From Hyphochytrium catenoides (Eukaryota > Protista > Hyphochytriomycota), in contig FLMG01000807.1 of assembly GCA_900088475.1 (NCBI GenBank), forward strand, positions 46,605 to 110,604: a stretch of 64,000 bases of DNA, in the 5' to 3' direction. How positions within the stretch are numbered: the first letter of the stretch is position 1; the number at the start of each line of letters is the position of its first letter. The notes below the pieces were generated by a model, which did not search any database, was not told the DNA's origin, and was given only the letters and a program-made list of their open reading frames with translations. This document shows, in pieces, positions 5,386-50,995 of this stretch. Made by a program: the position numbers and the translations under genes.

Positions 5386-6720
5386 CTACTTCCGAGACTG
5401 TGGACAGAGAAGAGAGATCCATGCGTAAGCGTTCTACAGGATTCATGCTTTCGAGTTAAGGTAGTACCACACTTACCTTCTTGGGTGAAGTAGGTCGCTC
5501 ATCCTGATGGTCATTCTCTCTTTTCTTCATACTTCTATGCGCTGGTGTACCCGAAAACGGTAGCCCCAACAGCTGATTGTGGGTCTCTCTCAGTCCTCTG
5601 AAATACTTCACCGTTTTGACCTTGAGCTCCATTGTGGCGTCCTCATCGCAGACGATGGCAGCCCGCCGATGAAGTTGAAGGACAGACACCGTCCACATGT
5701 GGTTTACTCCTTCCTCAATGACCTTATAAAGCGCGTTTGCTTTGTGAATGCCGGTAATTATGATGATTACCTCACGCGCATCCATGACGGTGCCTAGTTA
5801 GAAAAGATAGACGCAGAGCGTTAGCTGCCATGATTCGCATGTTATAAGGTGCCATTTTGGGCAAAGAAGTGCACAGTTCTCCTAAGTATGTAGAGGACGG
5901 AGCGAAGTCTAATGACTGCGGAGAAAGAAGCAGTGGCGATTCATTTGAAGACACAAGGCGCTGAACATCACGGATCATAGCCGAGGCACTTACCTACTCC
6001 CACTGTGAGAGCCATTTTAGGTACTTTGGAAATATCGTTGCCAAAGAACCGGGAGTTAGCTACGATTGTATCGTACGCCAAAGTCTTAACCCTGGTCCGT
6101 GACCGCAGCGAGGAACCTGGCTCATTGAATGCAATGTGGCCATCAGGTCCAATCCCTCCCAAGAAGAGCTCAATGCCTCCAGCATCCCTAATCTTCTTCT
6201 CATAGCTGTGACATTCTGCTTCCAGGTCCTTCGCGTTACCATCTAAAATGTTGACGTTCTCTCTCTTAATATCGATGTGCTTGAAGAAATTGTTCCACAT
6301 GAAAGAGTGATAGCTTTCAGGATGGTCTTGAGGAAGATTGACATACTCATCCATGTTGAAGGTAACCACGTGTTCAAAGCTTAACTCCCCGTTCTTGTAG
6401 AACTCGATAAGCTTAGCATAGGTAGGTAAAGGTGAGCTGCCTACATTCCAAAGGAGAATAATATGTGTTTAACCTACAAGTGTACATCACCCAGCCAAGC
6501 AATTTGCAATAGTTTGGGGCTTCGGCGCACCTGTAGGTAGCCCAAGCACAAATGGGTTGTCATGACTTGGTTTATAGTCCAGAATACGCTGTTTGATGTA
6601 TTTAGCAGTCCAGTCAGCGACCTCTTCAGCATTCTTCTGGATAATCTAGGATAATACCGAGCAGAGAGGTTCATTTCTGTTTTAACTGGGCAGTGTATGC
6701 ACAGTTCTTACCAGCCTCAT
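5386..6720 (-). CDS. GNPDA: Glucosamine-6-phosphate deaminase (eukaryotic GNPDA/NagB)
   Basis: Spliced MRL|[102 protein letters not shown]. The 3' end is either a micro-exon 5397-5386 (SRK*) or a read-through stop at 5456. Confidence 0.95.
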
Positions 6721-16524: not shown

Positions 16525-16860
16525 GAAGAAAGAGAGAGAGAGAGAGAGAGCGAGAGAGCGAGAGAGAGGGCGAGAGAGAGAGAGTGAGATTGAGAGAGAG
16601 AGAGAATGAGAGAGAGAGAGAGAGAGAAAGATGAAAGAGANNNNNNNNNNNNNNNNNNNNNNNNNNNNNNNNNNNNNAGAGAGAGAGAGAGAGAGAATGA
16701 GAGGGAGAGAGAGAGAGAGGATGAGAGAGAGAGAGAGAGACAACAGAGAGAGACAGACCAGGAGAGAGAGAAAGAGGGGGAAAGAAAGAAAGAGAGAAGA
16801 CGCAGATAGACAGAACCACAGACAGACAGAGTGTGAGAGAGAGAGAACAAAGAGATGGAG
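16525..16860. repeat. Long (GA)n microsatellite containing an assembly gap (16641-16677)
   Basis: Directly visible. Confidence 0.95.
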
Positions 16861-18789
16861 AAGTGAGGGAAAGGGACAAGGAAGAGAAGCAGACAGAAGA
16901 GATTGCCATGAAGACAAAACAAAGGGTAACACCAACGCCTGGCTTCCCCTCAATGACAGCAGATCCACAGTCTGTCTTTCTCCTTGGCCACGAGCTCAGC
17001 CAAACCAGCTGCCGTTAAGTGATCACGTGATCACGTGCTCACTGATCAGCCACCTAGCCAATCAAAGTCTGGGCAGGAGGATTGTTGTCGCTCATCGTGA
17101 GAGTTACCCAGAGAGTCGGAAAGAGAAAAACTGCCCTTGTCCATGTCCGTTTCCCTGTGTGACAGCTATGGCGTCTTTCGTGCGGATGTTCTTCCCGTCT
17201 CAAGACTTCACGACGACGATCCCTGCCCTGTGATACTTCTTTCTCCTTTCTGATGGATGTCATAAGGTGTCTGCTATGACTGTCTCTTCGTCCTTCCTCT
17301 TCATTGTCCTGGAAGAAAACTCCAAAGCTTGATAGATCCATCTGTTCCAATAGTAATCGTCATCATAATGGCAGCGTCGACAGCGCGGGTGCATAAGTCA
17401 CCTCTCTCCTTGAAAGGCTAAAGAAGGTAAAAAAAAGCCAACTATACGGCTCTTAGCCCTCTTCTCCATACCTGTGCTTGCACCAAGTACGGCCAACCAG
17501 TGGCAGCAGCTGCAGGCTGCCCTTTTAGCGCTGGAGCAAATCTCCAATCAACCTCGGTGTCCGTGCATTGTAGACCTGATCTCTGTACGAGAACATACCA
17601 AATCATCCTTAGCTATCTTCATTTATAAGGAGCAAGTGAAGGCGACTTCATACAACACACTCTGACTTGAACGGACTTCAAAAACAGCCTCTCTAACACA
17701 CGCTTTCTTCTATGCGCGTTCCTTCATAGAAGAGAATGTCCTAGCAAGGGTGAGCTCCCTTATCTCTTGTGTGCCGCCGCCGCGTTAATAAGGGCGATGT
17801 ATCATGGATTGTCCTACAGCGAAAAAAGTGTCTAAGGTCTTATTATTTGCCTTGATTGATCCTTCCCTAATTTGGAATCATGGAGCTTGGGCTAGCGTAA
17901 CAAACAGTTAGAGCTTTGGCAAATCTCTGTACATGCCAGGTAGTGGCGCGGCCGTAGGTCTGATGGCTTGTCCGGTGCGAGTAAATCTCTATCTTGAACC
18001 TTTCTACGTGCTCCTTGCTACCTCTTCTTCCCATCCTGATAACTTGTACAATATAAGGTCCTTTGGTAAGGACTACCAGAAAGACTAGAGTCAGCTTTAA
18101 CCTTCTGCTTGCTTTTCAAAAGAGAGTGAGCATTGCAGTGCCGGTCCGGAGAGGAGACAAGTCCCGCCTTTTTGGACAACATCTTCAAACAGAATCCAGT
18201 GACCTATCTTCAGCTCAGATTCTCAACCCACCGTCCACCAGTGATAGACGACGTAGATTAAGCTATCATCTTCTTCTTCTTCCTTATTTCATCACCACGC
18301 CGCCCCCATCCAAGCCACATACACTCTGTTACGGAAGGAACTTCCAGGAGCTTGATTTTGGTAAGAGCCAGCCGCAGTAGCCGCCAGTAGCACAGAGGCG
18401 AAGCGACAAACAATTAAACCTCATTCTTTCTGAGTAGCACGCCAACTACTGACAGTAAGACTTTATTGTAGAGGCTGATGAGATTAGGCGCGGCACTGCT
18501 CGATGACAACACCCGCCGTCGGGGATGCTTAATGCGCTCTGGTTCTCTTCTTCGTCTGAGGAATTGTCGGCTCCTTTCATGGATAGAGAGAGAAACAGAC
18601 GAAGTAGAGCGCAGTGAAATTGACTGAGGAGAAAAGTAAGGCGGAAAGAAAGAAGTAAAGCGAGACGAGAGACTTAAAAACCTCGTGCCTCTCACAGAAG
18701 GCCAATGACGCTACTTTGCGGTCGATAGTTAGTCAACCTTTATAAAAGAACTTTCATAGAATGAAGACACTTGGCCCGCTAGCGATGCA

Positions 18790-20422
18790 TCAACAAGACA
18801 TAGATAAGAAGGTGAGAACGCCATAAAAAATCAATGCCATGCCCGCAATAAGGTGACTATTATGGTCGTCGTGCACTCCAGACCTCACGATGTTGGGTTC
18901 CGTTGTTGTTATAGGAGTGGGGCTGCTGCTGCTGGAGCCGCTGTCATCATTGTTGCCTCCTCCGAATCCTGGAGAAGAATCATCAGAGCCTGTTGGGGAG
19001 ACAGCATCATCTGAAGCCTCAGAAGGTGTCGGAGATCCAGAATCAGAAGAGTCAGAACCGTCAGAAGAAGCTGTCGGGGCAGCAAGTGCCGATGGCGCAG
19101 CCGAAGCGGGTGGGGGCGGAGGAGAGCCATTGGGTGCTGGCGATGGAGTAACGGGCACCTGCGATGTCGGCGCTTTCCCCCCACCACCACTACTACCAGC
19201 ACCGCAGTTCCTGCAGGTAGAGCCCAAAGGGCAATAGGTCTTGTTTCCACAGCATCGAGCACTTGCAGGAGCACAGGTGCCGTCTGAACAGCACTGGAAC
19301 CCCCGAGGACAGTAGTGGCCGTCTGAGCAGCACTGAACATCAGCGGACGGAACACAGCCCCCACCAGGACACACATAGTTACACATCTTGCCACCGACCG
19401 TGCAGCGAGAGGCACACCCGTCAGAGCAGCACTGTTTCCCTGTCGGGCAGTAGTGAAGCTTGTCCTTACAGCACGTTGTCCCCTTTGGTGCGCAGCCCCC
19501 CGGGCAACATTGCTCGCCGGCGTCGCAGTGGCTGCCATCCGCGCAGCATATCGCTCCTTTCGGTGCACATCCGAGACCCCCGCAGCACTGTTTACCGGCG
19601 TCGCAATACTTGTCACTTCCTGCGCAGCATGTTGCATCCTTCGGTATGCATCCGCCCTCACAGCACCTCTTGCCCGAGTCGCAATATGTGCCGTCTAAGC
19701 AGCAGTCTACATCAGGGGAAGGCACGCACCCACCGCCGGGACAAGTGTACTTGCANNNNNNNNNNNNNNNNNNNNNNNNNNNNNNNNNNNNNNNNNNNNN
19801 NNNNNNNNNNNNNNNNNCCACTGCCACCACCACTATCCGCGCAGCTCTTCCCAGGTAGTGAACATTTCCCCGCTCCACAGCATTGTTGGCCCGCCAAACA
19901 GTAATGAAGCCCATCTGCACAGCAGTTTGCTCCTTTTGGTATGCAGCGGCCATTTCCGCAGCACTCCTCACTTGCCAGGCAGTAGTGAAGATTGTCTGAG
20001 CAGCATTTCACGTCAGCGGAGGGGACGCAACCACCGCCGGGACAAGTATACGGACAACCTGCAGCGAAATTCTTCATTGTCGCCCCGTCTAGCGCCGTTC
20101 TCGAAGAGGAGTTGGCCCATCGCTGCTCACGATTGACCGTCGTAATCTGGTTGTTGTCGTTGTGATTGCGGACACTGAAGTCGATGCCAAGCAGGGCAAC
20201 TGTCGTTGAGCATGAGCCGCCTTTCGCGGCACAGCCCGCTCCATTGCCGCAGCACTGCGAACCTAGAGGGCAGTACTGACCGTCTTTGCAGCACGTGGTG
20301 CCCAGCGGACAAAGAGGCGTCACGGCACGATCATTGTCGTCCGCGATAACGCTGTTCCCTGTCAATAGAAGCAGCCCACCAAGGATACAGAGACGGATAG
20401 ATAATGCTACCGCCGTCTTCAT
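18790..20422 (-). CDS. Secreted cysteine-rich repeat protein with Ser/Pro-rich stalk and probable GPI anchor or C-terminal TM; spans an assembly gap
   Basis: Signal peptide MKTAVALSIRLCILGGLLLLTGNSVIA; at least 9 units of about 26 aa, CC-x4/6-[YH]C-x2-G-x2-CC-x3/4-C; low-complexity S/P/D stalk; hydrophobic tail LIAGMALIFYGVLTFLSMSC*. Parts 20422-19818 and 19755-18790 flank the N-gap. Confidence 0.85.
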
Positions 20423-23122
20423 GATGACCTCCTTCTTGCACCGTTAACAAGTTCGTCTGTGTCGCGCCGTCAGTGGCTGCGACCTACCTGTGATCGACGT
20501 GCCTATCTTCATTATGATCCTTTCTTCCTCATGCTAGTCGGCTGCTGGCTCCTCCTCCAGAGTAGGACTAAAGCACTTCAGTGGATAAGATAAGATACTA
20601 TCCGTCTGGTCTATCCCTCTGTTCACCTCACAGCCGCCCTTGTTTTAGCAAGAAGGTAGACGGATGGGGGAGAGAAGAGATGATGAGGGAAGGGAAGAGC
20701 AAAGAGGATAGCTTGAACATGAGACGCGCCACAAGGATCTGGAGAAGCAAGCACAAGACAAAGATGGAGTGTCAATCGAAGGCCAACCATCCGATCGCCC
20801 ACAACTTCGTTTTCCCATCATCGTCATCCAGCTATTTATCCAGCATAGAGCTCTCGCGGGAAAGACAAGCAGAGAAGAGAAGAAGGGTGGTTCTCATGAA
20901 GAAGCCAAAGTTCTACAGAGTATCTTCCAATACGAAGGGGCCCCACAACCTCTTGTTCTCTCACCAGCATGATTTCTCCCCTCTCTCTAACTGCTTCCTT
21001 TCTCCTCATTGGCTAGCAGTGCTTGTGCTGGTTCCGATGGACGCAGGGATGGTCACCACCGTCTCTCCCGCCACGCCCAGTCGTCTTTATGCCTGAGGAA
21101 CGATTTGGACGCCACCAGGATCTCTTGGCTCTTCCCTCTTTGTAGAAGGTGGTGGTGAGTGAGTAGAGCTCTACCTTGGCTGGGCAGGCCACTAAGCCCC
21201 GCCGTTGGTCGATACGAGGAAACTTTGAAGAAGAATGCATGTCACTAATGGAGGAAGCTTGCTTCTGGCGGCTCCTCATCAGTACGACGAGCTCCTCGTG
21301 CTCCTCGTCGTCTTCAAGAACGATGGGGATCTTGTAAGCTATCAGGGGGCCAGTGTATCTTATACCGTCTTATTATTAGAAGTCCAAATGCAAAGACAGA
21401 ACAGTCCGTTTGCTTGTGGGCCCCCCTTCCTCCCCCTCGAACCAGCTCCGCCACAACTTTTGGTACGTCGCCCGCAGCTCTCTCAATAAATAAAGAGGCG
21501 TTGCAGCGCCTGACTAACCGCTGAGTGCCCGCTCCATGGTCAAAGGCGGCACTATCCTTCACTCCTCTTCCCAGTCCCATTTTCCTCTCCTCATAGAACC
21601 TTCTTCTCCTCTTATTATTATGGGAGGCAGCAGGTGGCTCGGCGGGGCCAAGTAAGCGGAAACTCTTGATATTCGAGGGACTGCTGCAACCCGCTATGGA
21701 ACTAGGACTGTTGACGATAGACATCGTCAATCCTCCGTGAACAATGGCTCATCCTCATCGCTGGGGGCGTAGTATTATGTTTATTGTTTGATGAAGGAAG
21801 GAAGTTGCTGACTTGGCGGCGGTGCGACGTCCACCATCATAAGAAGAGGCACCACCTTCGAACAAGCGAGTTTTTGGATGGAACTCCTATCACTCTCCTC
21901 CCTCTTCGTCGTCCGACGATGGCATGATGTAGGGAGAGAAGGGAAAGCCACGGTTTGCTAGTGGTGGAGACAGTGCTGCAACGGCTGCTTCGTGTTCTTC
22001 TTAGACAGCCTTCCCCGCAATCTCCTTACCTTGTGCACGCAACCATCCTCATTACTGTTGGTGGTAGTCCGTTCCTCAATGCCGCTGCTGCAATTCGTGA
22101 GCATCCATAGTAGTAGTAGTAGCAAGGATACTTCCTCGTTGCCACCACTTTCTTCCTCGTCCTCTCGCACTCCAGAAGAACGGAATAGCACTATTCTCAA
22201 GGCGTACAAAGACAAAGATGGAATGGAGAAACTCTTCTGCATCGCGCAGGCTGTACTTTCTTGTTAGCGACTTTTCCTCCGTCGTATCCCACTTCTATCC
22301 CGTGCTGCCCATTCTACTAATGAGCAGATGTGCATGATAAACCATCTGCCGCACCTTATCTATCTAACTATTCGGGGTTCAGTGTCGGTTGACGGTGTCT
22401 GATCACGAGCAGTCAGCATCCTGACCATACCAACCGCCAAACAGCTAACAGCACCAGTGGGAGATGACGGGCATACATGCCGATGATGGCAGCAGTATCT
22501 TTATCTTCTTGTTCCTCAGTCTTGAGTCCTTTTTACTTTTGCCACCTCTCTATCTCCACCTTATTCTGGCACCCCTACTATCAGTGGGGAGGCACGGCCC
22601 TCAAGAGGATTGTCTAGCATGCCAGGATCGTCTGTGCATTCTAGCCACAGAGTAATGTTGCCATCGACCAGGCCGCCCTGATCATCAGCAACCATCCAGG
22701 TTCTTCTCCATGAAAGTATGCGCGTAGCGCCTACTGCATATCACTAGCAGACTATAATCGGACAGTCTGGGCCGTATCTCGGCCTTAATAATTTATTGTC
22801 GCTGACATGGCAACCTTAGTATGTCTTCAGCGGCCAGTAGAGCTCACCGCTACCCTAATCGGGATTCAAGCTCGCCATCGAAGTTGGCAACAGTAGGTTG
22901 ATATCGACAGGAGAGCAGGAGATATGCTATTGGCTGAAGAGACGACTGGTGGCTGTTGGGTTAACAGGAGTACCTGTTTCCTCTCCTCAACGTACTCGAC
23001 GTAAGAAAATATTCAGCGGAACCGATGAGCGCTCCATTCAGGCAACAATCAGTGACGGTGAGGAGAGATATTGAAAATATTCTTGTGAGCTATGTTCCAG
23101 ACTGCAATAGAAAGAGAGAAGC

Positions 23123-26100
23123 CTAGTCCGGAGGGTGTGAAGGTGAGGGTGGAGGGCTGGAGATGTGGATTTTGATTGCGGGAGGGGGCTCAATCAGTCC
23201 ATTCCGATCTTCCTCTTTTTCCTCCTGACTCGGGTCCTCGTAGTCCGCCGGAGACCTGAAAGATTGATGGCCCTGCTGCAGAGGAGGTGTCTCATAACCT
23301 TGAGAACGACCCAGCGCTGCCTGCTGCAAGAGGTCGTCTGACAGCAAATGCCTTAGACTCTGCTCAAAGCCGAGCCCCTCTGCGAAAAAGTGAATAGTAG
23401 ACCTAGAAAATGTGTAGAGTTTTGCTGGAGAGACGGGGACATTGAAACGACCGAGAGTTTTGGTGAAATGGAGAGGAGAAAGTGATGAGTTTCTATTCTA
23501 GCCACAGAGAGTAGAGATGAAGGTGATCGTGGTGCAGCACTATGTAGCAAACCTCAGAAGGACAGGATCGGTACCGGTTGAAGGGTTGAATAGAGGAACG
23601 AGAAAGCAAGCAAGATATAGGAATTGGCGCCAGGGTTACTGATAGCGAAGATAGAATCATCGGCATTTCAAAGCACTAAGATCAAAGGGTTAAAGCTTCT
23701 TTGCTTACAGAAGTCGAGTAACTTGGAATAGTAGAGCACAGGGATGATAAGCTTGCCCAGATCCTCTGCAAAGCCAAGCTGATCGCTGATGAGTTGATTT
23801 GCATGATTCTCGTCCGAGACAACGATGAGAAAAGCTGCGCATTGCTTGATCAGGTCCTTCACCCTTCTAATGAAGTGGTCACTGCTTTCCTTAGGCCTTC
23901 TCTTCTCCCTAATGCCACGGAATCCCATCTCCTTCTCCAGGGCTGAAAGAAGCTGTAAAAGCATTTTGTACAGGACAGCGAACAGTGTGAAAGATGGACA
24001 CAAAGGGAGACCGGAAAGAGACAAAGAAGACGTGAACATGCATCAAGATGGGGACAGTAGGACACAAGCAGCATACAGTGGATCAGATAGATAATTGTAT
24101 CGGAAGATGTAAGCTCAAGCGGCACGCGAAAGGCCTAGAATTCTCCTGGAGACTGCATTCTGTATAAATACAAAGAGGCATCCCCGTTGGCATCCCAAAG
24201 GGCAAATCCCCCAAGAAAGAGATGCAAGAGGAGAAACAATTGTTGTGAGGTAGGATAAAGACCACCGTGTAGAGAGAAGTTGATGAACCGAATGACGGCA
24301 GGCAAGGGCCTTCTACTCACCTTAGCGCAGAAGTCATCGTGCCGGCCCCCGTCCGCGATGAAAACGTACGGAGAAGGACCTCCTATCATCCGAAATAGCT
24401 GGGACATTGTTGGAGGACTTAGACCATTGGGTGACTCATTTCCTCCTCTCCAAGGGGCAAATATCGCAGAGGGAGTGGCTAGCTCATTGACGACAGAGAG
24501 CCTTGATGCCACGCTAATATCACGATCTCTCGGTCTTGTCTCTCCTGTCCTTTCCTTCTCAAGTTCGTCCCTAATACCATCAGCGAGTAGGAGCATTTGT
24601 CTACTGAAGGCAGTTTCGTCGTAAATGTATTCTCTTTCTTTCTTTTCTGAATCTGCAGGTCGGACGCAGGCAACTATCGTCTCCTTAAAGGAGGTGATCT
24701 GCCGAGTGTAGAGAGAGACACGGAGCTCCTCCGGGATGTCACAGTCTTCACATTGAATCGCCACCACTGCGTTAGGGCGGAGATACGATTGGCCTATGTT
24801 AGCAGGGCCGTGTCTTAGGATGACCACAGTACGGCTGACACATGATACCTGGCTTGCCGACGGATTTTGCATACGCGAGCTCTTTCATACACCTTTGGCC
24901 GCACCAGAAGGGAAAGGTAACGGGCAAGGCATCAGCTCACAAAGGAATTTGTTAAGTGCGGCGGAGTAAAAAACTTTGGAATGAGATGGCTATGGAGTCC
25001 AAAAGAGGGGAATGACAGAGATTGGTCGAAAAGAAGGGAGAGAAGAGAGAGAGGGAGAGAGAAAGATAAAAAGAGAGTGAGGTAGCATAGAGGACAAGCG
25101 CACTTTCAGGAAGAGAGTGATCGATCGCGGTCGTACCACTGAGACTTGTGATAGTCTTCTGAGAGGATTATTAGCATCACCTTGCATTGAGAAATGCCGC
25201 GGACAATCTCTTCCCTCCACACTGAACCCGCACCTATCCCAGTCGGCGCCACAGCATCTATCCAAGCTGTTATGTTCAGCTTCTCCAAGGCGTGACAGAC
25301 CTAAAGCCAACCACAAGGAAAGAGATGCTCATCAGCGCTCACTTTAATTCCCATCCCTCTAGTAGCGCTACAGGGGATGTAAATCACCATCGTGAGAGCG
25401 CGAGCCCTGATGCTTACCTTCCAGGCAAACTGAGAGCGTGAGTGGGTGTAGCTGTAAGAGGAAGAATAGGAAAGAGTGAGTTTTTGCACTGGTTGAACGA
25501 CAAGGAAAGAAGGATTAGTCACTCCCTAACTCCTTCACTAGTTTCCTTTTGGCCATCGTACCTGATCATGACGTCCCGTGCCCCAGCAGCTTTTTTTAGG
25601 GCAAATCCAAACTCTGAGGTTTGGACGCAATCCAACGGACGCTGGCCTGCGATTGAGAGAACAATCATAAGCAACCCTACCAAGATTGAACTGTGGCCAA
25701 AACAGACAACGTTGGTTTATGAGAGGTCTAAGAACACAGTCATTAGCAGAAGAACTTCAACCAGCCAGAACCATACGTGTACAGCGGCCCCTAGCACCCA
25801 CCCCTGTCATTTACTGCTGTGATGGAAGCACCAGCACGCAGAAGGCTTATCGCAGCAGCGCGGTTATCTAGTTTGACAGCCAGATGCAGAGCCGTGTCGC
25901 CATTAGGAAGCTGTGCGTCAATGTTGAGTCCCGACGAACGCAGGAGATTGATAAGAGAAGTATCCAGATTTCCCAATTCGGCAGCGCAGTGCAATGGGTT
26001 CATCATCCTCAGGTCGCGATGCCTTGGGAAGAAGGAAGTGTCAACGTGTGGTAGAGGCACGTGATCACAGTGGCATCTGTTGTGAAGAATAACTTACTGA

Positions 26101-28948
26101 GGTGAGGCGCCAGCCTCTAGTAAGCCCTGGACTATCTCTTTGTTGTTGTGCAGCGCAGCCCTGCATAGGAAGAGACCGAGTAGGCCATGCTCAGCGTTAA
26201 CTGACGTGAAACCTTGATAGACGCTATAAATTTTCCCTTCGTGTAGGTGCCTTTCCATCTTACCAGTGCATGGGAGTTCTACCGCCATTGTCTTCGGCGC
26301 TCGGATTGGCCTTGTAACTTAGTAGGACTTTGGCTGCCTCTGTTGCTCCTGCAATGGCCGCCCAGTGCAGTGCAGAGCGCTTCTTGACGGATTCCAGGCG
26401 TTGAGGTGGGTCAGGTTCCTCTCTCTCCAGCTGCTTTCTAAGCCCTTCAACATTGTTCTCAGCGGCTAACCGGTGTACACGCGACTGAGGGGCATCCCCA
26501 CCAAAAGAGTCCAATAGTCGCACGAGGGGGCGATGCCCTCTTTGAACAGCTACTTGCAGAGGTGTGACTGTCATGTATGAAGCAGAGGGATGAAACAGGA
26601 GGTTCGCCTTATGTTGAACCAATAGCTTTGCTGTTTGAGGAATAGTGCAATAGTAGAGAGGAGGAAGGGCGGCACTGTCATAGTAAGAGTCAGCGCAAAG
26701 GTTGGAGTCGGCTCCGTGTACTAAGAGCCACTCCACAGCCTCCACCTGGCCATAACCACAGGCAAAATGAAGAGGAGAAAGAAGAGAATTCTCGAGCTCC
26801 CTCTGTAAGTGCTCTCGATGTAGCAGACCAGTTCCACGCCTGGCTGTGAAGAGGCCGACTGCGTGAAGGGCCCAGAGATACCAGTCGTGAATGCGATGAT
26901 ATTCCTGCAGGGGCCGATCGAGCGCATTTAGATCAAAGCCTGCCCTGTAAAGGAGACGAAGGAGAGAAAGATCTCCCATTGCTGCAGCCACGTGGACAGG
27001 ATTTTTTCTGCTTTTGCCGAGAAAAAATAGAAGACGTCGAGGCCGAGGATAGAGCTTCCTCGCCCAGCCACGGCCCAGCTGCTGTCGCCCGTGCTGAAGT
27101 ATTAACTCTACGGCGTTGTAGTCCGCGCTGACGACTGCCTGATAGAGATCACAACGTAGTGTCTCTTCGTAGTTGCTTCGGCACAGGGTCTTTATAGGAA
27201 GCTTTTTGCGGAGTTGAGCAAAGAAGAGCTTCCGAGGACTGGCCTAATAACAAAGGGACAAGAGTACGATATGTTTACGTCAAAGTCGTCTGCCCGCGAT
27301 CTCGATGAGTAATAATGAAGGAGTTGAAGTTAGAAGATAAGCTCAGATAGAGTATGAGTGCTTTCTTCACGTCCGATCCTACCTCTTCATAGTCAAAGCA
27401 AGTGTAGGGGAGGGCTATGCTCTGTCTGTGGAGGTGGAAGATGTAAATTTGCCAGTGAAATGCAAGAAAGAGGAGGAAGGCAAGAACGGTGCCCACTCTC
27501 TCTACTGCCCGCATATCCTCACCGCAACTGTCTCCACTTGTCAAAAGGCTGACCAGCATGGCAACAAGCCAGATGGTGAGCAGCAATAAGCACCCTGCAT
27601 TCAAGAGGAAAGGAAACGTCACTAAGACAGCTTCCAGTAACCCAAGGAAGAAGATAAGACTAGAGCAACCATAGACGTCGCCATGGTGACACTTTCCAAA
27701 GAGACATGAAAGCACGGTGCCGTTATCTTCACATGTAAAGGTACAGGTAAGAGAGAAGCGTCCACACTTGGACCAAATGTTGAATGTTAGAGCTTACTGA
27801 CATGCAAAGCAGGACGCCACACAAGTAAAATAGCATAAGTTTAAGACTCCAAACAAGCCAAGGTCTTAGAGAGATTGGAAGAGACAACAGAGAAGAGAGA
27901 CAGGGAAGGGAAAGACAGACGCAAAGATTTTGAAAGAAAAAGAAAGAGAAAGAGAGAGAGAAAGAGAGAGGAAGAGAGACGGGAGGAGTATTAGACGGGC
28001 GGTATAGCGCTTTGCAAGATAGAGTGCGACGTGATACCCGTAATGGCACATTCGAGTAGCCCGCAGAAGACCGTGCGATAAAGGACCCTTGCCCTATGAT
28101 CTACGTGGAAGAGACGAAAGGCCTTGACTGCCGGGAAAGCTGACAGTCCTAGCAATAGCGCAACGAAGAGTCCCAGTCCGGACTCCAAGACACTCAGAAG
28201 AGCCACAGCTTGGCAACTGTCCCCCGCCTCAGGAAACGTTTCCGAGGCAGATGAGAGAAAGAGGACATCAGCAAGTGTGAGAGAGGAGAGAAGGAAGACC
28301 AGGAGAGAGGATAAGAGTAGTTGCCGACAGAAAAACGCATTGCGGATGCTGCTGGAGGCTCCTGGACCAGTCAGCACCACACTGCCCGTTTGGCTGCTCT
28401 CTTCTGTCTGTCTATTCTGCCCCTGATCGTCCTCTCGGTCTCGCCAAATAGATCCTCTCTCCCTCCTAAGGGCAGCCGCAGGCGTGGGTATCGCTATGTG
28501 CCGGTTGGGAGTTTGAGCGCTGAACTGCTCATGCGCTTTACGGGGAGGGACTGAGAAAGAAGTAGACGGATGCCCATCCAGAGGAAAGAGGGAAGGGAGA
28601 AAAAGCAAAGACGGAGAGGAGGAACAAGGCAGGGAAGGAGCGGAGTAAGTAGCGGTAGCATTAGAGGAGTGCTGCTCTGAGAGTGTACAAGAGAGAGGAA
28701 ATGGACCAAAGGAAAGAGAGGAAGTCGCCAGCTTATTCGAAAGAGATACGACACGTGGCGCTTTGTTTTAGCACTTCGCCGTTACTGCTGCTGCCGATCA
28801 ATTTCCAAGGCCGAATCTCTGTCTTACCTTGAGCTGTAGGGGTTCGTAGACAGTCAAGAAAATCGGGAGCTTCGTCATCCTCCACTTCAAAGGACTGGCG
28901 GGGAGTGGAGACCCGGGACAGAGGAAAGGGTGCTCTGTTTCTATACAT
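23123..28948 (-). CDS. Multi-pass membrane protein with ankyrin repeats and two TIR domains (TM-ANK-TIR-TIR)
   Basis: Phase-consistent exons 28948-28828, 28550-28038, 27864-27798, 27659-27383 encode several hydrophobic helices. Exons from 27243 to about 25600 encode ankyrin repeats (NPVHVAA, SPLHFAC, TPLQVAV, SALHWAA, TPMHWAA, NPLHCAA, TALHLAV). TIR1: DVMISYTHSRSQFAWKVCHALEKLNITAWID..WREEIVRGISQCKVMLIILSEDYHKSQWCMKELAYAKSVGKPVVAI. TIR2: YVFIADGG..DLIKQCAAFLIVVSDE..LISDQLGFAEDLGKLIIPVLY. The last junction (about 23705 to 23402) is uncertain. Confidence 0.85.
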
Positions 28949-29798
28949 TTCTACCCTATCTCTCTAGAGCTGAGAAGTGCTTTGCTTTAGCTAGCACCAG
29001 GGACGTCGGCCGATGACCTATAGCTCAGAGCTGGAATCAGGAATCAGAACTGCAGAAGTTCAATCCATCGTCGGCGGTCACTAGTAACACGCGGTTCCCG
29101 GCACTAATCCTATGCCTAACCACCAGGACTGAGACTCTTCCATCGCAGCATTGGCATTGGAACGCCTCATCTTCGTTGGAGGACCAGCATTGAGGCAGCT
29201 CTTTGCCGGAGTCCAAGGTCCGCGACAGAGATCTGAGTTCCCGATAATCTTCGACGGAGACACACAACTCCAGGATCAGAATAGCCGCTAACGCCAACAA
29301 GTGAAACGACACAGAAAATAGGAACAAGAGCCTCAGGGCGTTTTGTCAATCTTCCGCTCTATCTCTAGCACACTCTGTCTAGCAGCATAAATAGCATTTG
29401 ATTGTTTGTATCTCTCTCTCTTGGGTATCTGTCTTCTTGTGATGTCTGGCCTCCCACCTTCGCTTGCGGCTCACACTTTCCGCACTGCAGGTGAGGAGGA
29501 TCGGAGGTGCGTGCGTCCGTGTTGAGGGCAACGCCAATGGCGCCCTTTCTCTCTTTCACTCTTCTCTCTCTTTGTTCTCCTCTTCCTCTCTCTTCCCAAT
29601 CACATGCCGCCCTACCAGGACCAGTGATGCTGTTTAGAGCCCAAGCGGCAGTGATGCTGTTTAGAGCCCAAGCGGACAGGGACATTCCAGCAGCAAACGC
29701 AGTAGAAAGAGGCTCAGAGGCCAGGAGGAGTACGCTAGTTATGAGATGCCGACAGTGGTCCAACCTCGCCCCATAATTCTAGAGAGGAGAAGAGTAGA
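28949..29798. promoter_or_regulatory. Divergent (putative bidirectional) promoter region between the TM-ANK-TIR-TIR and PDZ-TBC genes
   Basis: Inferred from head-to-head start codons at 28948 (-) and 29799 (+). Confidence 0.45.
29622..29675. repeat. Perfect 27-bp tandem duplication (cagtgatgctgtttagagcccaagcgg x2)
   Basis: Read directly: 29622-29648 and 29649-29675. Confidence 0.95.
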
Positions 29799-34532: not shown

Positions 34533-37500
34533 TTAGAATTCAAACTTTATCTGCGAAAGGTTGAGCAGCAAATGTTCCTTCATCATGCCTGAAATCATAT
34601 TCTGCCTGAGCCTAGCCAAGACACACAGCGAAGATTTGGAGCTATTAGTACCATGCCCACAACTTCCTCTATTTCTGCGGGTCGGGTCTATTGTCTGCCC
34701 CTGCGCGCCGTTAATGCTTACTTTAGCTCTTGCATAGGATGTTGCGTCTCCGAGAGAACTGCAAGCATAAAGCCAGCTTCCTCCGTGCAAATCCAGTTAT
34801 CTGAGAGGCTACGGAAATAGATAAGAGGGAGAAATCAATAGAGGGTTTAGACATCCATGCGAAGCAACAGCAAAAAGAAGGAGGGACACTGCAATACAAA
34901 GTGAGACACACTGCGGCCCGCCGGCCCTAACTGAGAAATAAGAACTTACTCTAAAGAAACCAGCCGGGATTGCGGCACTGCATGCATGAGTGCTGCAATT
35001 CCAGGAGAAACGGGAAGCTGAGGCTGATCTCCGATTGGAGTCTCTACTTCCTCGCCACAGGACACACGACCTCGTTGATCCTTCCGACTCCGCTCAACCT
35101 CATAGCCGCCAATGAAGTTGCCTACAACCGTTAAGGCCCCAGCTTGTCAATAAGAATATCAAGTTACAAACCTCTAAGCTACTCTTTCATTGAACTTTCT
35201 CTTAGCCATTCCCCAGGTCCATGTCACTTCTGTGGGTTGTTTACCTATGAGGCTGCAGACGCTGCGACGATCACTGACCGTCTCTACTATTCTGGCCCGC
35301 TCCTTTTCTCTCCCTTATGTCAACAACTCAATAACTCGATACCCTGTAGTACTTACCGGCTAGGTTGAGATTGACCAGCCTTCCTGTCACCAGGACGTGA
35401 GACATTGCATTGATGACTACCATTGTGTCCCCAAACTGTCCCGCCAAAGCATTGTAAGATAGGTCTAACACTGAAAGGGAAGAAGAGGTGCAGAGAGCCT
35501 TGCAGAGCAACAGAGTTCCGGATGGGTCATAGCGTCCAGAACCTCTCTCATCTACCCCACAGAGTATATTTCTAGAGATGTTAAGCTCGCACAGAGAAAG
35601 AGAGCTATTGACAAACGATGCAAGGACCTTCGCCCCATCTACACCCAAGGAGTTGCGGGAGATGTCAAGAATCTTAAGCATCTGGGTGCTTTGTAATGGC
35701 TCCAGCAAAATAGCAGCTCGGCTAGGGCCTGAATGGACGCACGCGGAATAAAGTTAACACAGAGTTATTTAGGAGTCGTGACGGACGGCAGTCATTGGAA
35801 CTCCACCAAGACTCCAAGAAGAGCACTGTAGCCGAAGAGTAAGTGTAAATAACCTCTTACCTAAGCTATTGTTGCTGATTCTTAGCTCTTGCAGCGAGAG
35901 ATCAGGCAAAGTGTCCCTCAGCACAGTTACTGCCTCCTCTCTATGATAAGGATAGGGTCCACATAAGGCATTCGACGATAGATCCAGTGCGGTCACTCCG
36001 CAGACGTTGAGAGCATCACAGAGCACCTGAAAAGCGCTGACATCAAAAGCTGCAACTCTATCGTGGCGGTGTCTTAGTGCATAGCACAGGCCATCGCCTG
36101 CCAGCCTCACTGTGCGAAGGTTGGAGGTCATAAAGGCAAGAGATAAAGCGACAAGTCCATCTTCACAGAGCTCTCCGATGTGATTGTCTACCGGAAAAGG
36201 CAAGTGTTCAGTCTATGATTAGCTCTTTGCATAGAGAGGACTCCAGCTGGAGAAGATTCCAAGAAGGAGAGAAGAGAATGGCAGACAAAGAGAGACAAGA
36301 GAAAAGGCGCAAAGTTACCCCTCGGCAAGTGGTGTAAGGCACATGGAACGAGGTGGTCAGTAAGCGATGGACACAGTCTTTTAAGTCTGGGCCTCAAGCG
36401 GGTGAAAGACTTACAAGACAGGTCAATGCTTTGTAAGGCAGAACGCTCATTTTTGACGGCATCTGCCAGAAGCTTGAGCCCTTCCAAAGCTCCGCCCTTT
36501 GCCAGGTCATTCCGAGACAAATCCAACGCGATCGTTGTCCTGTTATGAGAAAGCAGTCGGCCGATGACAATTGCGTCCAAGCAGCCCAAAGAAAGAGCGG
36601 AAAGCGAGATCTCAGGGGCAGCAGTGGTCTCGGTGCTATCGCAAAGAAGCTTCACGGGTAGTGGCACACGATCGACAGTCAGAACTTGCAAGCGGCTCCG
36701 AGGGACCGCGTCACAGATCGCAAGGAGGCCTGATTCGGAAATAGAAGTAAGTTAGGACCGGAGAGTTCGCGTTTGGTGCAGGAGAAACGTGTAAACAAAG
36801 AGTCTAAGGTCAGGTATAGGGAAGGAGCGTCAGACAGGAGGACGAGAAAAGTGGAGTGCAGGAGCGGCCACCTGATGTATCCATTATTTCATGCAGTGTG
36901 CTATCCACCCCACACAGAGCAGTGTCGGAGATGTCCAGCTGCTCCACCTTAGAGGAAGGAAGTCGCGTGGCGATGAAGAAAGCCTCATAGCCCTGCAGGC
37001 CACCGGGTCGGTGAGATAAATCGACTTCTGGCTTGCTGAGATGGATGCCATTCAAAACTGCCAGACAGCTATTTTGCGTCACAGCATGAATCAGCAGAGA
37101 GCTTGTATCCTCCTCCCCTCTACTCTCTATTGAAGTTTTTCTCCGACCCCTGGTCCGGTTGTCTCGGAGGTCCAGGCTCTCCAAAGTGTTATTACTAGCA
37201 ATGAAGCCAGCCAATAAAGCTAGCTCTTCGTGCTGGAGGCGGAGATTGGACAGGCTGAAGAAAGGAGAAGGTCAGTAAGGTCTCCCCTCGGCCTCTATTA
37301 TGGGCTTTTCTAATCGAGAAGGTACAAAGGGGCGAAGAACAGAGATCCCATAGAAACGCTAGTGGAGACAGCAGATATTACAGGCAGGGAGGGTGACGAG
37401 GTTGGAGAAGAGTAACAAAGAGCATCTAGCCAGCAAAAGCGCCAAATGGGACGAGTAGGGTTTCGGTAAATAGAAATGGAAGGCCTACTTTAGCACTTTG

Positions 37501-46446: not shown

Positions 46447-48288
46447 TCAAGGAGGTAACACGAGAGGGGTACCCATAGACTTTCGGACTTCATAAGGAGG
46501 AAGCCAATGGGTTAGGAGATTTTCGAACAGAGCCCGTACAAGGGATGGAGAGGGTCCTGTCTTCCTCTGAAGATAGCGGCATATCTCCATTGTGGGCTTC
46601 ACGCCTGTCTCATCGAAGATTTGGATTGTCCGAACAAGCCGTTCAGGGTATCGATCGGCCTTTTCCAGCCGACGAATAAATCGAAACACAAGTGAGGCAT
46701 CAGGTTGCCAGGTCACGCGAAGAGGGAGTGGACGCTTGCCTCTCCCCTTATTGTTAACCGCTATCTGTCCCTTTGTAGAGGAGAAAAGTGCCGACAACAC
46801 CTCCTCGGTTTCGTCCCATTGACCCTCACTAGTCAGGAATTCCAGCACTTCCTGCACCTGCAGGGCTGTTAGCTGCAGCTGTCTCTTCTTCATAGCAGAT
46901 ATACACTGCCAAAGCAGGCTAAGATCTTGGTTTCGTTTGGCATCTCTAAGAAGAGGGTAGAACTCCCTCGTGTCGCCTAAAGTCAACACCTTCTGGCGTT
47001 CCCACCATTCCGCGTAGTGGTTCAGCCTTCGCCGTCTATAGAACCCAATAAGATGACAGAAAGATGCGCGGTCGGGCATGAGACCCCATTGGGGTAGCTT
47101 TTGTTGAAACAGTCTCAGTGCTTTCTGCTCTGCTTGGTCGGCCAATTGTTCATTATCGTGCTCCTGGCAATAGGCCGCTAGTAGAAGGTTGAAGAGCTCA
47201 ATGTGGGGAGTTAGCGCTAGATCTCGGTACGCTGTCTCAACCAGGTGCTCTACTTTGTCTGTCCTTCCCCTCTGCAAGTAGAAGAGGCCCAAGGCCTGAA
47301 GAGTTCGTAACGTTGGCTTGAGCCCATACTTGTTTGACATTAGCTGCAAGATACTTTCTGCTCTTTCTGCTTGTCCTCTGGACAGTAGAACGCTGATCAA
47401 GGCTTCAAACACCTCAGCGTTAGGTTCGACCCCAAGCAGCGCAATGGCATCTTGCAGAGCTTTGTCTAGTTTATAGGCATTGGTCACTGAGGGCAAGGCG
47501 ATGAAGGCATTGAGCGTCTCCACATTTCTCTCAGTGTCATACTCTAAGCTAGCCTTCACCAGGTCTAGGCCTAGACTAGATCGGTTGAAAGCGCCACAAG
47601 TACGAAGAATACGATTGAGCGCTGTCGCTGATTGTAGCATCAACCCTTTCCCCACCAGCTCCGTCAGCGCCTGTGATGCCTCTTTCACTTTGGCCTTTTC
47701 TACCAGCGTCATTGCTATCTTGATGCCGATGGGCTCTGTATCCAGCCCGAAATGCTCTGACAACGAGGCGNNNNNNNNNNNNNNNNNNNNNNNNNNNNNN
47801 NNNNNNNNNNNNNNNNNNNNGTTGATGAGGAGCTCTATCACGGAGGCAAACGTTTCGGCGGACGGGCTGGTGTCACTAACCCCGCGCTCAGAAAGCAGCT
47901 TCGACAAGGACGCCCATTCAGTTAGCTGAAAAGGCCCTGGCGGGACTTGATGGCGACTTGACGCAGCTCCATCTTCTTGCTGGCTAATGGCTTGGGGAGA
48001 ACTCTTAGACGGTGCCAACGGACGGCCTTCTGCGTCTGGGCTTCCTACTTCACTATATGCTAACGGAGCTGCATCCGCGGTAGAGGAGGACGATCTGGAA
48101 AGGCAAGCGTTTGTTCCATGCCGCCTTTGCCACCGGCCTGGCGGCAGCAGTGCCAAAACCGCGCTTGCATCGGAAGGTTGTATTCTTGCTCTGCCAAGTC
48201 CTCTCCACGCTAGATGAGGATTAACTGAGGGCGACGCTCCAGGACCTAATGTATAATAAGCGAGGACTAGGCGTCTCGTGCCCTTCAT
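46447..48288 (-). CDS. Pentatricopeptide repeat (PPR) protein, probably mitochondrial; apparently intronless, spans an N-gap
   Basis: About 35-aa repeats: GVEPNAEVFEALISVLLSRGQAERAESILQLM..GLKPTLRTLQALG.., PHIELFNLLLAAYCQ, GLMPDRASFCHLIGFY, GVKPTMEI. Arg/Ser-rich N-terminus resembles a transit peptide. Confidence 0.85.
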   Translation of the reverse strand: MKGTRRLVLAYYTLGPGASPSVNPHLAWRGLGRARIQPSDASAVLALLPPGRWQRRHGTNACLSRSSSSTADAAPLAYSEVGSPDAEGRPLAPSKSSPQAISQQEDGAASSRHQVPPGPFQLTEWASLSKLLSERGVSDTSPSAETFASVIELLINXXXXXXXXXXXXXXXXXASLSEHFGLDTEPIGIKIAMTLVEKAKVKEASQALTELVGKGLMLQSATALNRILRTCGAFNRSSLGLDLVKASLEYDTERNVETLNAFIALPSVTNAYKLDKALQDAIALLGVEPNAEVFEALISVLLSRGQAERAESILQLMSNKYGLKPTLRTLQALGLFYLQRGRTDKVEHLVETAYRDLALTPHIELFNLLLAAYCQEHDNEQLADQAEQKALRLFQQKLPQWGLMPDRASFCHLIGFYRRRRLNHYAEWWERQKVLTLGDTREFYPLLRDAKRNQDLSLLWQCISAMKKRQLQLTALQVQEVLEFLTSEGQWDETEEVLSALFSSTKGQIAVNNKGRGKRPLPLRVTWQPDASLVFRFIRRLEKADRYPERLVRTIQIFDETGVKPTMEICRYLQRKTGPSPSLVRALFENLLTHWLPPYEVRKSMGTPLVLPP

Positions 48289-49198
48289 TTCCTCTTGGTG
48301 TCACAGGGTCGGTCTTCTAGGCCGATACTCGGTCATGCTCGAAGCCGCGGGAGCATGATCACGTCACCAACAATAGGAGGCTACTCAGGAGGCGTGAATA
48401 TCTGCTCAAACTGCCCTTCCCAGGTACAATAGGCGCCCAACAATATCAAGCATATGTCTGCCATCTCCTTCGTCTGGGCTGCTGCTCTTCCACTGAAAGC
48501 TTTGGAAAGCGAGCCGGCTACGAAGTCTCCTGACTTCTACTTTCCTTCCAGGTGGACTGCCTCCTCTTGCTGCTGCTCTCTTGGTCATCGCATGGAACAG
48601 TGGAAAGGGAGGAGGGCGCGGTTCCTTGTGTTTGGTAGAGTTGTGAGGAGAGCGTCTACGATGCCTGCCGTTAGCGGTCTCGTTAGTGGTCGATGATCGT
48701 TTCTTGGCGCTAAAATAATGCTAAGAGCTGCACTATAAGGTCTTTATTCTTAGGCACATCATGAAACTTATCGAGAGGCACACCGTCTTCTTGGTCTTCG
48801 CATGTTCTTTGGATTGATTGTGGAAGAGGTAAAGCAGGAGATGTCAACCACATGGCGAATAAAGATAAAGCCTAAGCGACATGGAAGAAGTAAACTCCCT
48901 GACCACCTGACCCAGAAGAGTTAGAATGGAGCGTGACACTACTCAGCTACTGAAGATTGTTCGTTGTCGCCCATCGGTCAACAGACGGACAGGATCACTA
49001 TCTCTTTATAGCTCTCCATGAAGATCATCGTCTGTGCTCTCTTATGGCAAGCAGAGAGGCTCTAGAGCGGTCAGCAGTCCGATAAATGAACGTTGTATTC
49101 TATTGCTCTCACAGCCTGGACACACCTATTTGAAGCCAAATAAGCAGGGCATCTATTGCTGTGGTTGCCCCTTCAGTGTGGCCAATGACGGATGCGAA

Positions 49199-50170
49199 CT
49201 ATTGGACAAAAAGCTGTGCAATCTCCCGCATAGGATGCTTCTTAGGCGTCGGGCCCCGGCGCCGGATAGGGTTCGCGCCCTTGAGAGTCCTTATCCCAAC
49301 TCCTCCAAACATATCACGGCACATCATGTCCGAGAAGGTGATGCGATGTGTGGCGACTCCTGGCGGCGGCGGAGAGCCTTTGGGAATATGAATCTGTTCA
49401 ATGTACTTTCCTTCGGCAGCAGGGTTGAAGGGATCAAAGAGAACATGCGGGGATCCCATGGTATAGAGGCTCTCAATCGTCCGCTCCAACTCAAGATCAA
49501 AGCGCTTCCACTTCGCCTTTCTTCCTGTAGGGTTGTTGTCATACCGGTATTCCCATCGAATGGAAGGATCATACTCCATATCACTAATCCACTCGTCTAT
49601 CTTTACCGCACTGTAGATGCGCTTCGCTGCGCCACAGTCACACTTCTTCTCTCCAAACCCCTTGCAAATGCAGTATTCGCATGCACAGCGCTTCTTAAAG
49701 ACGGGTGGATACTTGCAATGGGGGCAAATGCGGTTCGGAGGAAACGGGGCATCGCGTCCTTGTATGGTCCGGAAGAGATGGCCTCCCAAATGTCTTCTAT
49801 CTTCAATGTCTTCAGAGAGTGTCGGTCGACATCGTGGATAGTCCTCGGACACTTTCATACGCTCTAACTTTTCAGCTTGCGCGATCGGTCCGAACACATC
49901 CTTCACCAAGCCTGTAACTGGATCTCTGGGAACGATAATTTTTCCTTGCGCATTTCTGTGGATGCCCTGCGCTCTCTCCCTTGAGCGTGCGGATAGCTCT
50001 TCCTCTGTTGGCTGACGTTTGGCGCTCAATTGCTCGCACATAGGTTTGTGCGCCTTCCACGCCGCTTTTTGGCATTCCTTAGAGCAATATCGAGCAGTTT
50101 CACAGGCACTGCAAAGTAATAGCCTTCCAGCTTCCTGCTGGGTCTTCTGACAATTCGCGCATGCGTCCAT
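49199..50170 (-). CDS. MYND zinc finger + Cys-rich module + WWE-like domain protein, intronless
   Basis: CANC..LLLCSACETARYCSKECQKAAWKAHKPMC (zf-MYND); CPHC..CACEYCIC..CDC; RWEYRYD..WKRFDLELERTIESLYTMG..HRITFSDM..PIRR (W-W-E pattern). Confidence 0.8.
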   Translation of the reverse strand: MDACANCQKTQQEAGRLLLCSACETARYCSKECQKAAWKAHKPMCEQLSAKRQPTEEELSARSRERAQGIHRNAQGKIIVPRDPVTGLVKDVFGPIAQAEKLERMKVSEDYPRCRPTLSEDIEDRRHLGGHLFRTIQGRDAPFPPNRICPHCKYPPVFKKRCACEYCICKGFGEKKCDCGAAKRIYSAVKIDEWISDMEYDPSIRWEYRYDNNPTGRKAKWKRFDLELERTIESLYTMGSPHVLFDPFNPAAEGKYIEQIHIPKGSPPPPGVATHRITFSDMMCRDMFGGVGIRTLKGANPIRRRGPTPKKHPMREIAQLFVQ

Positions 50171-50995
50171 CTTGATCTTAGGTTGACTGAGAGCAAGACG
50201 GAGCTAGGCTCTGTAAAATTCAACTCCACTATAGCGAAGATCCACCAACTTCCTTAGAAGAAGCCAGCGAGAGGCTTCCCGACCTTATACCAGGACTCTA
50301 TGAGAGTTTACTGGCTTCTCCTGGCTGTCGGTCCTGCAACCAACCTTCTCTCAGGCAAAGAAGAAGCAGGGCAGCGAGCAGCCAAGGACTTTTCTTCTCA
50401 TGAAGATCCATCGCCTTTTCTCTTTGCAGGTTCGCACATATCGACGCCACGTAGCCGCTAACGCCCACCGCACCGCGTCCATCCAGCTTTGGTTATCATT
50501 TGTTGGTTACTTAGCATGTTGTGGGGGCTGTTACAAACAATACCTGCCAAAAGGTATGGCATTTCTGTAGTGTTACCTTAGGCTTTATGACACAACTTTC
50601 GTCGGTCTGACTAACAATTGCCCCACCCATCTCGTTGAGCTTAATGCCCGTCTTTTCCTTCAGGCGTGGGTGGTTACTGCACTCTCGGTAGGGTGGATGG
50701 GTCATGGCAGTTAGAGAATGGGTAGGTGATGTGGGTGTTACAAGACAGAAGTGACGGTGAGGCTGCGGCGCGGGAGCCAGCACCGGCCGCCGCTGCACCA
50801 CTGCCATCGCTCGCCCACGCTGCGATGGTCCGATAGCCTGAAGCGCGTCTGGAAGAAGCTCCCAGACTCTATTTAAAGATCACTTTGCCTCCTCAAGTTG
50901 CTATATGTTGTACTCATCCGTCACCGGGCACTTGGGTTGAAGAAACAAAGAGTACACTCAGAGGAGCGCTAGGCAGCTCTCCTTTTGAAAGCAGG

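Follow-up and report, generated by a model that had tools for sequence, protein, structure and literature searches.

Structure of the locus

We analyzed a 64,000-nucleotide (nt) stretch of Hyphochytrium catenoides DNA (contig FLMG01000807.1, positions 46,605 to 110,604 of the forward strand), called here the window and numbered from its first letter. The window consists of eukaryotic, intron-rich DNA of about 50% G+C, and carries several recognizable genes. On its minus strand, running from 28948 to 23123, 13 exons with splice sites read from the sequence form a single open frame of 1186 amino acids, in which a hydrophobic N-terminal region is followed by an array of ankyrin repeats and by two TIR domains, named TIR1 and TIR2 below. 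All 12 introns are canonical GT-AG introns of 75-368 nt and are in phase, with donors of the GTAAG, GTGAG, GTACG, GTATC and GTAGG types. A phase-consistent chain of exons across this region was first proposed in a reading of the letters without database searches (the sequence-only reading), and this chain is borne out by the present model, which translates into its 1186 residues without a stop.

The hydrophobic part of the protein is encoded by the first three exons (all exons are on the minus strand; a slash marks an exon border). Exon 1 (28948-28828) begins with the proposed start codon at 28948-28946, which is the first ATG following an in-frame stop, and encodes a polar N-terminus (residues 1-40) up to the donor CAAG/gtaaga; this 5' end is putative. 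Exon 2 (28550-28038; residues 41-211) lies within a 258-codon open segment, between the acceptor ttctttctcag/ and the donor ACGG/gtatca, and encodes a disordered Arg-rich segment, two predicted transmembrane helices (TM1, 28335-28252, and TM2, 28215-28126) and the start of a weak third one (TM3). Exon 3 (27726-27383; residues 212-326) contains an NGT/Cys-rich loop and three further helices (TM4, 27670-27605; TM5, 27598-27533; TM6, 27493-27428).

Exon 4 (27243-26264; residues 327-652), entered through the acceptor tgttattag/, encodes a basic stretch next to the membrane and the greater part of the ankyrin array, and the last ankyrin repeats with their C-terminal cap are found in exon 5 (26160-26098), exon 6 (26022-25802) and the first part (25646-25591) of exon 7 (25646-25562). 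TIR1 (25581-24561; residues 770-925) occupies the end of exon 7 (to 25562), exons 8 (25451-25418), 9 (25300-25137) and 10 (24892-24849), and the start of exon 11 (24766-24321). The latter exon (residues 857-1005), which lies between the acceptor ctaacgcag/ and the donor TAAG/gtgagt, encodes strands D-E and helix E of TIR1, a linker of 60 residues and strand A of TIR2 (PYVFIADGG). TIR2 (24377-23309; residues 987-1125) then continues through exon 12 (23952-23709) into the start of exon 13 (23424-23123), the remainder of which encodes a Pro/Ser/Glu-rich C-terminal tail (23308-23123, including the stop codon at 23125-23123).

Two possible additions to this model were tried and rejected. An extra hydrophobic exon in intron 2 (about 27866-27800) has no acceptor/donor pair that preserves the phase, and a 5' extension into a hydrophobic open reading frame at 29040-29345 is precluded by the stop that ends this frame and by its lack of an ATG and of a consensus donor. 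The latter frame is a 102-codon open segment on the minus strand just upstream of the proposed start. It includes a Cys-rich part as well as a hydrophobic stretch, LLFLFSVSFHLLALAAILILELCV, and 89 nt separate its stop from the ATG at 28948. The introns of the gene also contain (CT)n-type microsatellites, at 25035-25079 (intron 9) and at 27926-27979 (intron 2).

Ankyrin array and tandem TIR domains

The ankyrin array (about residues 355-766) is composed of eight motif-clear repeats together with degenerate and capping repeats, about 8-11 in total, where the sequence-only reading had counted at least seven. Both Pfam Ank_2 (E=4.3e-24 on 26263-27243) and Pfam Ank (E=2.9e-9 on 25794-26093) match it significantly. 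The repeats are continuous over the borders of exons 4/5, 5/6 and 6/7 (TPMHW/AALHNN, GASPQ/HRD and NDRG/QRPLD, respectively), and exon 7 connects the ankyrin exons in phase to TIR1, placing the ankyrin repeats N-terminal to the TIR in one polypeptide. The ankyrin and TIR exon junctions can be considered fixed, because the domains continue across the exon borders. Comparison of the ankyrin exon with 5.8 billion proteins turned up no relative in the length range of 180-572 amino acids, just one generic ankyrin protein at 45 bits, and a tblastn search of the 1186-residue model against the window found no paralogue of the gene inside the window. Near the window end, at 62201-62868 on the minus strand, there is another ankyrin-repeat segment (Ank_2, E=1.6e-10); it had no tblastn match to the model (E<=0.01) and is therefore not a close paralogue.

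When spliced, TIR1 reads DVMISY...ITAWID...VWREEI...CKVMLIILSEDYHKSQWCMKELAYA...VVAIQ over exons 7-11, and the exon borders fall within it as DVMI/SYTHSRSQFAWK/VCHALEKLNITAWID...SQW/CMKELAYAKSVGKP/VVAIQ; the domain is thus split over about five small exons, as had been noticed in the sequence-only reading. A complete TIR has a flavodoxin-like fold with strands A-E and helices A-E, of which strands A to D and helices B and C can be recognized by their motifs in the spliced translation. The motifs of TIR1 include DVMISY in strand A, WID following strand B, W.EEI, W842-C-M-K-E846 and a BB loop rich in Gly. Exon 9 alone matches Pfam TIR_2 (PF13676) with 36.3 bits (E=8.9e-9, profile positions 16-69 of 122, on 25109-25300), above the gathering score of this family (28 bits), and gives the TIR domain of the sequence-only reading a profile match. 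In the ESM Atlas the same exon falls into TIR_2/ThsB-type clusters (0.94), and its ten best named hits all belong to one family. A PADLOC search with TIR1 gave a weak match to PDC-S66 (E=5.8e-5), and the best match of exon-sized TIR pieces to PDB sequences, for which such pieces are too short, was the Cat1 TIR (E=0.24). The glutamate of W842-C-M-K-E846-L, encoded by a GAG codon found exactly where the Glu of a WCxxEL motif had been placed (24880-24882, minus strand), occupies the WxxxE/catalytic-type position as read from the sequence. A Glu of the WCxxEL type, situated in helix C and usually part of WxxxE, is the catalytic residue of NAD+-cleaving (NADase) TIRs, among them SARM1, plant TNLs, AbTir and ThsB.

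The second TIR of the tandem, which likewise stood in the first reading, is upheld by several lines of evidence of differing strength. Its match to Pfam TIR_2 (E=0.029, 15.3 bits, on 23671-24042) is under the gathering score and its matches to the PADLOC ThsB models are weak (E=0.0025-0.04), while exon 12 is placed by the ESM Atlas among TIR_2/ThsB-type proteins (0.94, 171 shared features), again with all ten best named hits from one family. TIR1 and TIR2 align locally in register, with a score of 74 versus 26.7 ± 4.0 for shuffles (z=12). In this pairwise alignment Gln1063 (codon 23779-23781, minus strand) stands opposite Glu846, and in the corresponding TIR2 motif, L-I-S-D-Q1063, a Leu stands opposite the Trp of TIR1, so that TIR2 lacks the catalytic Glu.

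The predicted membrane region

Kyte-Doolittle analysis of the N-terminal region gives five strong helices (residues 113-140, 153-182, 231-252, 255-276 and 290-311) and one weak helix (residues 194-213), within the range of about five to seven helices that had been estimated from the sequence alone. Basic segments (the N-terminal 110 residues, residues 183-195 and residues 311-345) alternate with acidic or NGT/Cys loops. The most likely topology has six helices with both the N- and the C-terminus in the cytosol, an arrangement that would fit the positive-inside rule. Cytosolic ankyrin and TIR domains require a topology with both termini inside, in agreement with the six-helix model.

The base composition of exons 1-3 resembles that of coding DNA. 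These exons are periodic in base composition by codon position (chi-square p=3e-4), following the GC1>GC3>GC2 order of exons 4-13; exon 3 is periodic also when taken alone (p=8e-4), and the concatenated introns show no such periodicity (p=0.62). The GC content of exons 1-3 (0.53) matches that of the other exons (0.465 in the introns), and their purine content is exon-like. Codon-usage log-odds in which stops are counted rank the model frame best of six for the membrane exons, in a test that is circular. None of the profiles of known membrane families (G-protein-coupled receptors, ion channels, PGG, transporters) matched the membrane exons.

A probable single gene, and its alternatives

The reading that we favor, and consider fairly probable, is that a single 13-exon gene encodes a polytopic membrane protein with an ankyrin array, an enzyme-type TIR1 and an apparently dead TIR2. 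About ten ankyrin repeats and the tandem TIR pair would be located on the cytosolic face of the membrane. TIR1, with the full motif set of enzymatic TIR_2/ThsB-like TIRs, would be the likely catalytic unit, cleaving NAD+ either to deplete it or to make a signal of the cyclic ADP-ribose (cADPR) type, and TIR2, in which neither the Trp nor the Glu is preserved, would probably serve as a non-catalytic partner or scaffold that aids or regulates TIR-TIR assembly. The likely role of the ankyrin repeats is to bind a partner or to autoinhibit the TIRs, the latter in the manner of the ARM domain of SARM1. NADase TIRs need ordered self-association for their activity; the membrane domain would localize the protein and, by letting it cluster within the membrane plane, could govern whether the TIRs make the contacts required for such activity. 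By its motif TIR1 is a candidate NADase, and the protein may have a role in immunity or cell death. The terms "sensor" and "receptor" are conjectural for this protein: the searches brought up no homologue of its membrane part and no recognizable ligand-binding or channel family, and this part may therefore be an anchor alone.

Several observations weigh against this reading, and they bear on the gene model, on the membrane domain and on the enzyme in turn. The join of the membrane exons to the ankyrin-TIR exons on one transcript is one that we infer from the exon structure, and the locus could instead hold two genes, coding for a small polytopic membrane protein (exons 1-3, with a stop at 27278) and for a soluble ankyrin-TIR-TIR protein with an unrecognized first exon. 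A search for RNA runs across the whole locus listed none; a search with exon 4 for runs of any kind listed metagenomes of low share and DNA runs from the source organism, and nothing else, and aligning four runs yielded one 156-nt metagenomic contig, inside exon 4, with no joints, so that no transcript displays the exon 3/exon 4 junction. If intron 3 were retained, the exon-3 frame would indeed reach a stop, and the literature that mentions oomycete ankyrin-TIR proteins does not present them as membrane proteins (PMC9153377). Against two genes stands the structure of the junction itself. The open frame of exon 4 starts exactly at the acceptor and its first in-frame ATG lies only inside ankyrin repeat 2, so that the exon is without a usable start codon and therefore needs an upstream coding exon. 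Between the stop at 27278 and the exon-4 acceptor (27243) there are just 33 nt, too few to accommodate a separate 3' end as well as a promoter and a start exon, and any alternative start exon would have to sit within the other gene. Intron 3, in addition, has a good donor (GAG/gtagga) and a good acceptor (tgttattag/) in phase and 139 nt apart. Two separate genes therefore appear very unlikely. More improbable still, in our estimation, is that the hydrophobic "exons" are non-coding, being open frames in a pyrimidine-rich 5' untranslated region or intron, with the real N-terminus supplied by a short unrecognized exon. The region is pyrimidine-rich, which alone is enough to give open frames rich in Leu, Ser and Phe; low-complexity DNA in other parts of the window also contains long open stretches in wrong frames; and codon-usage log-odds with stops ignored do not single out the model frame in exons 2-3, in a genome with little codon bias. 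Homology is of no help here: exons 2 and 3 had no match in Pfam, NCBIfam or PADLOC, the best ESM Atlas score for the membrane region was just 0.72, a phmmer search of exon 3 against 1.84 billion representative proteins returned one spurious tandem-repeat protein (E=1e-4), and scans of metagenome contigs with a membrane-exon query and with an ankyrin-exon query gave no confirmed locus. As the membrane region has no homologue, conservation cannot back the call that it is coding. What speaks for coding is the codon-position periodicity, significant in the membrane exons and absent in the introns, together with the exon-like GC and purine content, the composition of the helices (about 20-28 residues each, with W, H, Q, Y, M and G and not L, S and F alone) and the inter-helix loops, which obey the positive-inside rule. 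Just five of the helices are strongly hydrophobic, and a five-helix topology would put the C-terminus outside the cytosol. With the enzymatic and the scaffold readings of the TIRs combined, the single-gene architecture, resting on the logic of the gene structure, is highly probable.

The question of what the TIRs do divides these two readings. The same gene and architecture could encode TIRs that are non-enzymatic scaffolds, nucleating a membrane signaling complex, with the Glu of TIR1 kept for structure. The TIRs of MyD88, Mal and most TLRs act as assembly scaffolds in this way; an ankyrin array is a generic module for protein binding; and TIR2 is already without the Glu, indicating that catalysis is dispensable for at least one TIR of the pair. 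The catalytic Glu of TIR1, moreover, was assigned via its motif and not via a profile or structural alignment. A 2026 preprint described Glu-dependent cADPR production by TIRs of a choanoflagellate, an amoebozoan, a cryptophyte and an oomycete (bioRxiv 10.64898/2026.04.20.719644), and in that study just 4 of the 29 TIRs of unicellular eukaryotes with a conserved Glu made a cADPR isomer, the other 25 making none on expression. That assay sought cADPR isomers, and plain NAD+ hydrolysis could escape it. Besides the Glu, TIR1 also retains a Trp at the fourth position ahead of it, as well as the DVxISY strand and a Gly-rich BB loop, and the contrast of a live and a dead site in one chain suggests that selection maintains the TIR1 site specifically. 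A pair of TIRs acting purely as scaffolds is hence possible, though on the unlikely side. We would give rather less credence to an extension of the enzymatic reading in which the six helices of the hydrophobic domain form a new type of sensor or pore, linked in cis with the TIR NADase. If this were true, the gene would represent multi-pass membrane receptors of immunity or cell death with a design distinct from those of TLRs, NLRs and SARM1; in one form of it, a single chain would both make the signal and act as the membrane effector, by analogy with Thoeris systems in which the product of a TIR opens a membrane protein.

Relation to known TIR proteins

As a module of immunity and cell death, TIR enzymes occur in bacteria, plants and animals alike; in protists, tests of what they do have only just begun. 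Protozoan TIRs are known to be architecturally diverse (Toshchakov and Neuwald 2020; PMC7075850), and uncharacterized ankyrin repeat-TIR proteins were reported to be common to some oomycetes (Lapin et al. 2022, Plant Cell; PMC9153377). The remark of the sequence-only reading that it did not recognize the architecture as a characterized one therefore stands in part: the ankyrin-TIR core had already been noted in oomycetes, and the addition of a membrane region and the live/dead tandem were not found described. In a limited collection of full-text literature, we found no multi-pass membrane domain joined to ankyrin-TIR and no live/dead tandem of TIRs in such a protein. The oomycete proteins resemble the present one in the fusion of ankyrin repeats to a TIR in a eukaryote that is neither plant nor animal, and differ from it, as far as a comparison by description only can tell, in that membrane helices and a second TIR are not described there. 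The gene described here is also far more intron-rich than typical oomycete genes. Most likely, it extends a little-studied ankyrin-TIR design among the repeat-domain TIR proteins of unicellular eukaryotes.

Other TIR systems share single features with this protein. Both TIR exons have TIR_2/ThsB-like sequences as their best matches by profile and by embedding, and TIR1 has the WxxxE motif of the bacterial NADases of the TIR_2/Thoeris ThsB type; these matches are weak and were obtained on fragments (E=1e-2 to 1e-9), and the gene here is eukaryotic, has many exons, joins its TIRs to ankyrin repeats and a membrane domain, and lacks the context of a ThsA-type effector. SARM1 (ARM-SAM-SAM-TIR) is similar in being membrane-associated and in having helical repeats, which could autoinhibit, N-terminal to a TIR of the enzymatic type. 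It differs in that its repeats are ARM and not ankyrin, in its SAM oligomerization domains (absent here), in its one TIR as opposed to two, and in its mitochondrial targeting sequence, in place of which the present protein would have integral multi-pass helices; beyond the TIR fold, no sequence relationship between the two was seen. With TLR and IL-1R the protein shares the membrane location and a cytosolic C-terminal TIR. The sequence-only reading had set it apart from these single-pass receptors with their LRR or Ig ectodomains, and rightly: five to six helices with short outside loops and no ectodomain are predicted here, Pfam found no LRR or Ig on the locus pieces scanned, ankyrin repeats lie between the membrane and the TIR, and the TIR is in tandem.

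An ankyrin array combined with a multi-helix membrane domain is also found in ACD6-type plant proteins, TRP channels and plant Shaker channels, and ACD6 acts in immunity. The domain order in our protein is reversed relative to ACD6 and TRP, there is no TIR in ACD6, TRP or plant Shaker, and Pfam detected no PGG, Ion_trans or other membrane family in the membrane exons.

If such a family exists, it would point to a further way of controlling TIR assembly, through confinement or clustering in the membrane and not through an NLR or SAM scaffold, and it would offer a tractable live/dead tandem pair for studying how composite TIR active sites are formed. Should the lineage be close to oomycetes, the gene would also give a wider context to the uncharacterized ankyrin-TIR proteins of that group.

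Neighboring genes and other features of the window

On the question of lineage, exons of a glucosamine-6-phosphate deaminase gene (5459-6468, minus strand; Pfam Glucosamine_iso, E=4e-12) are the most informative neighbors. The best named matches of the deaminase exon are oomycete proteins, with 77-84% identity. These matches suggest that the lineage may be related to oomycetes, a suggestion that should be taken with caution in view of the high conservation of this enzyme and of the intron richness of the DNA. No identical deaminase protein was present among the 5.8 billion proteins searched, and so the proteome of this genome is apparently absent from that collection.

Assembly gaps (N runs) occur at 16610-17230 and 19457-20443, flanked by low-complexity CT/GA-rich DNA in which long open frames overlap in several frames on both strands; in such DNA the length of an open reading frame is, by itself, weak evidence. 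Three further minus-strand features lie on the other side of the gene. Open segments with leucine-rich repeats at 35331-37271 (LRR_6, E=1.2e-5 on 35331-35753) probably belong to one multi-exon LRR gene. They are followed by two neighboring genes on the same strand as the ankyrin-TIR gene, one represented by a 617-codon open segment with weak PPR repeats (46450-48300), and the other by a 334-codon segment that begins with a MYND zinc finger (49202-50203; E=1.4e-11).

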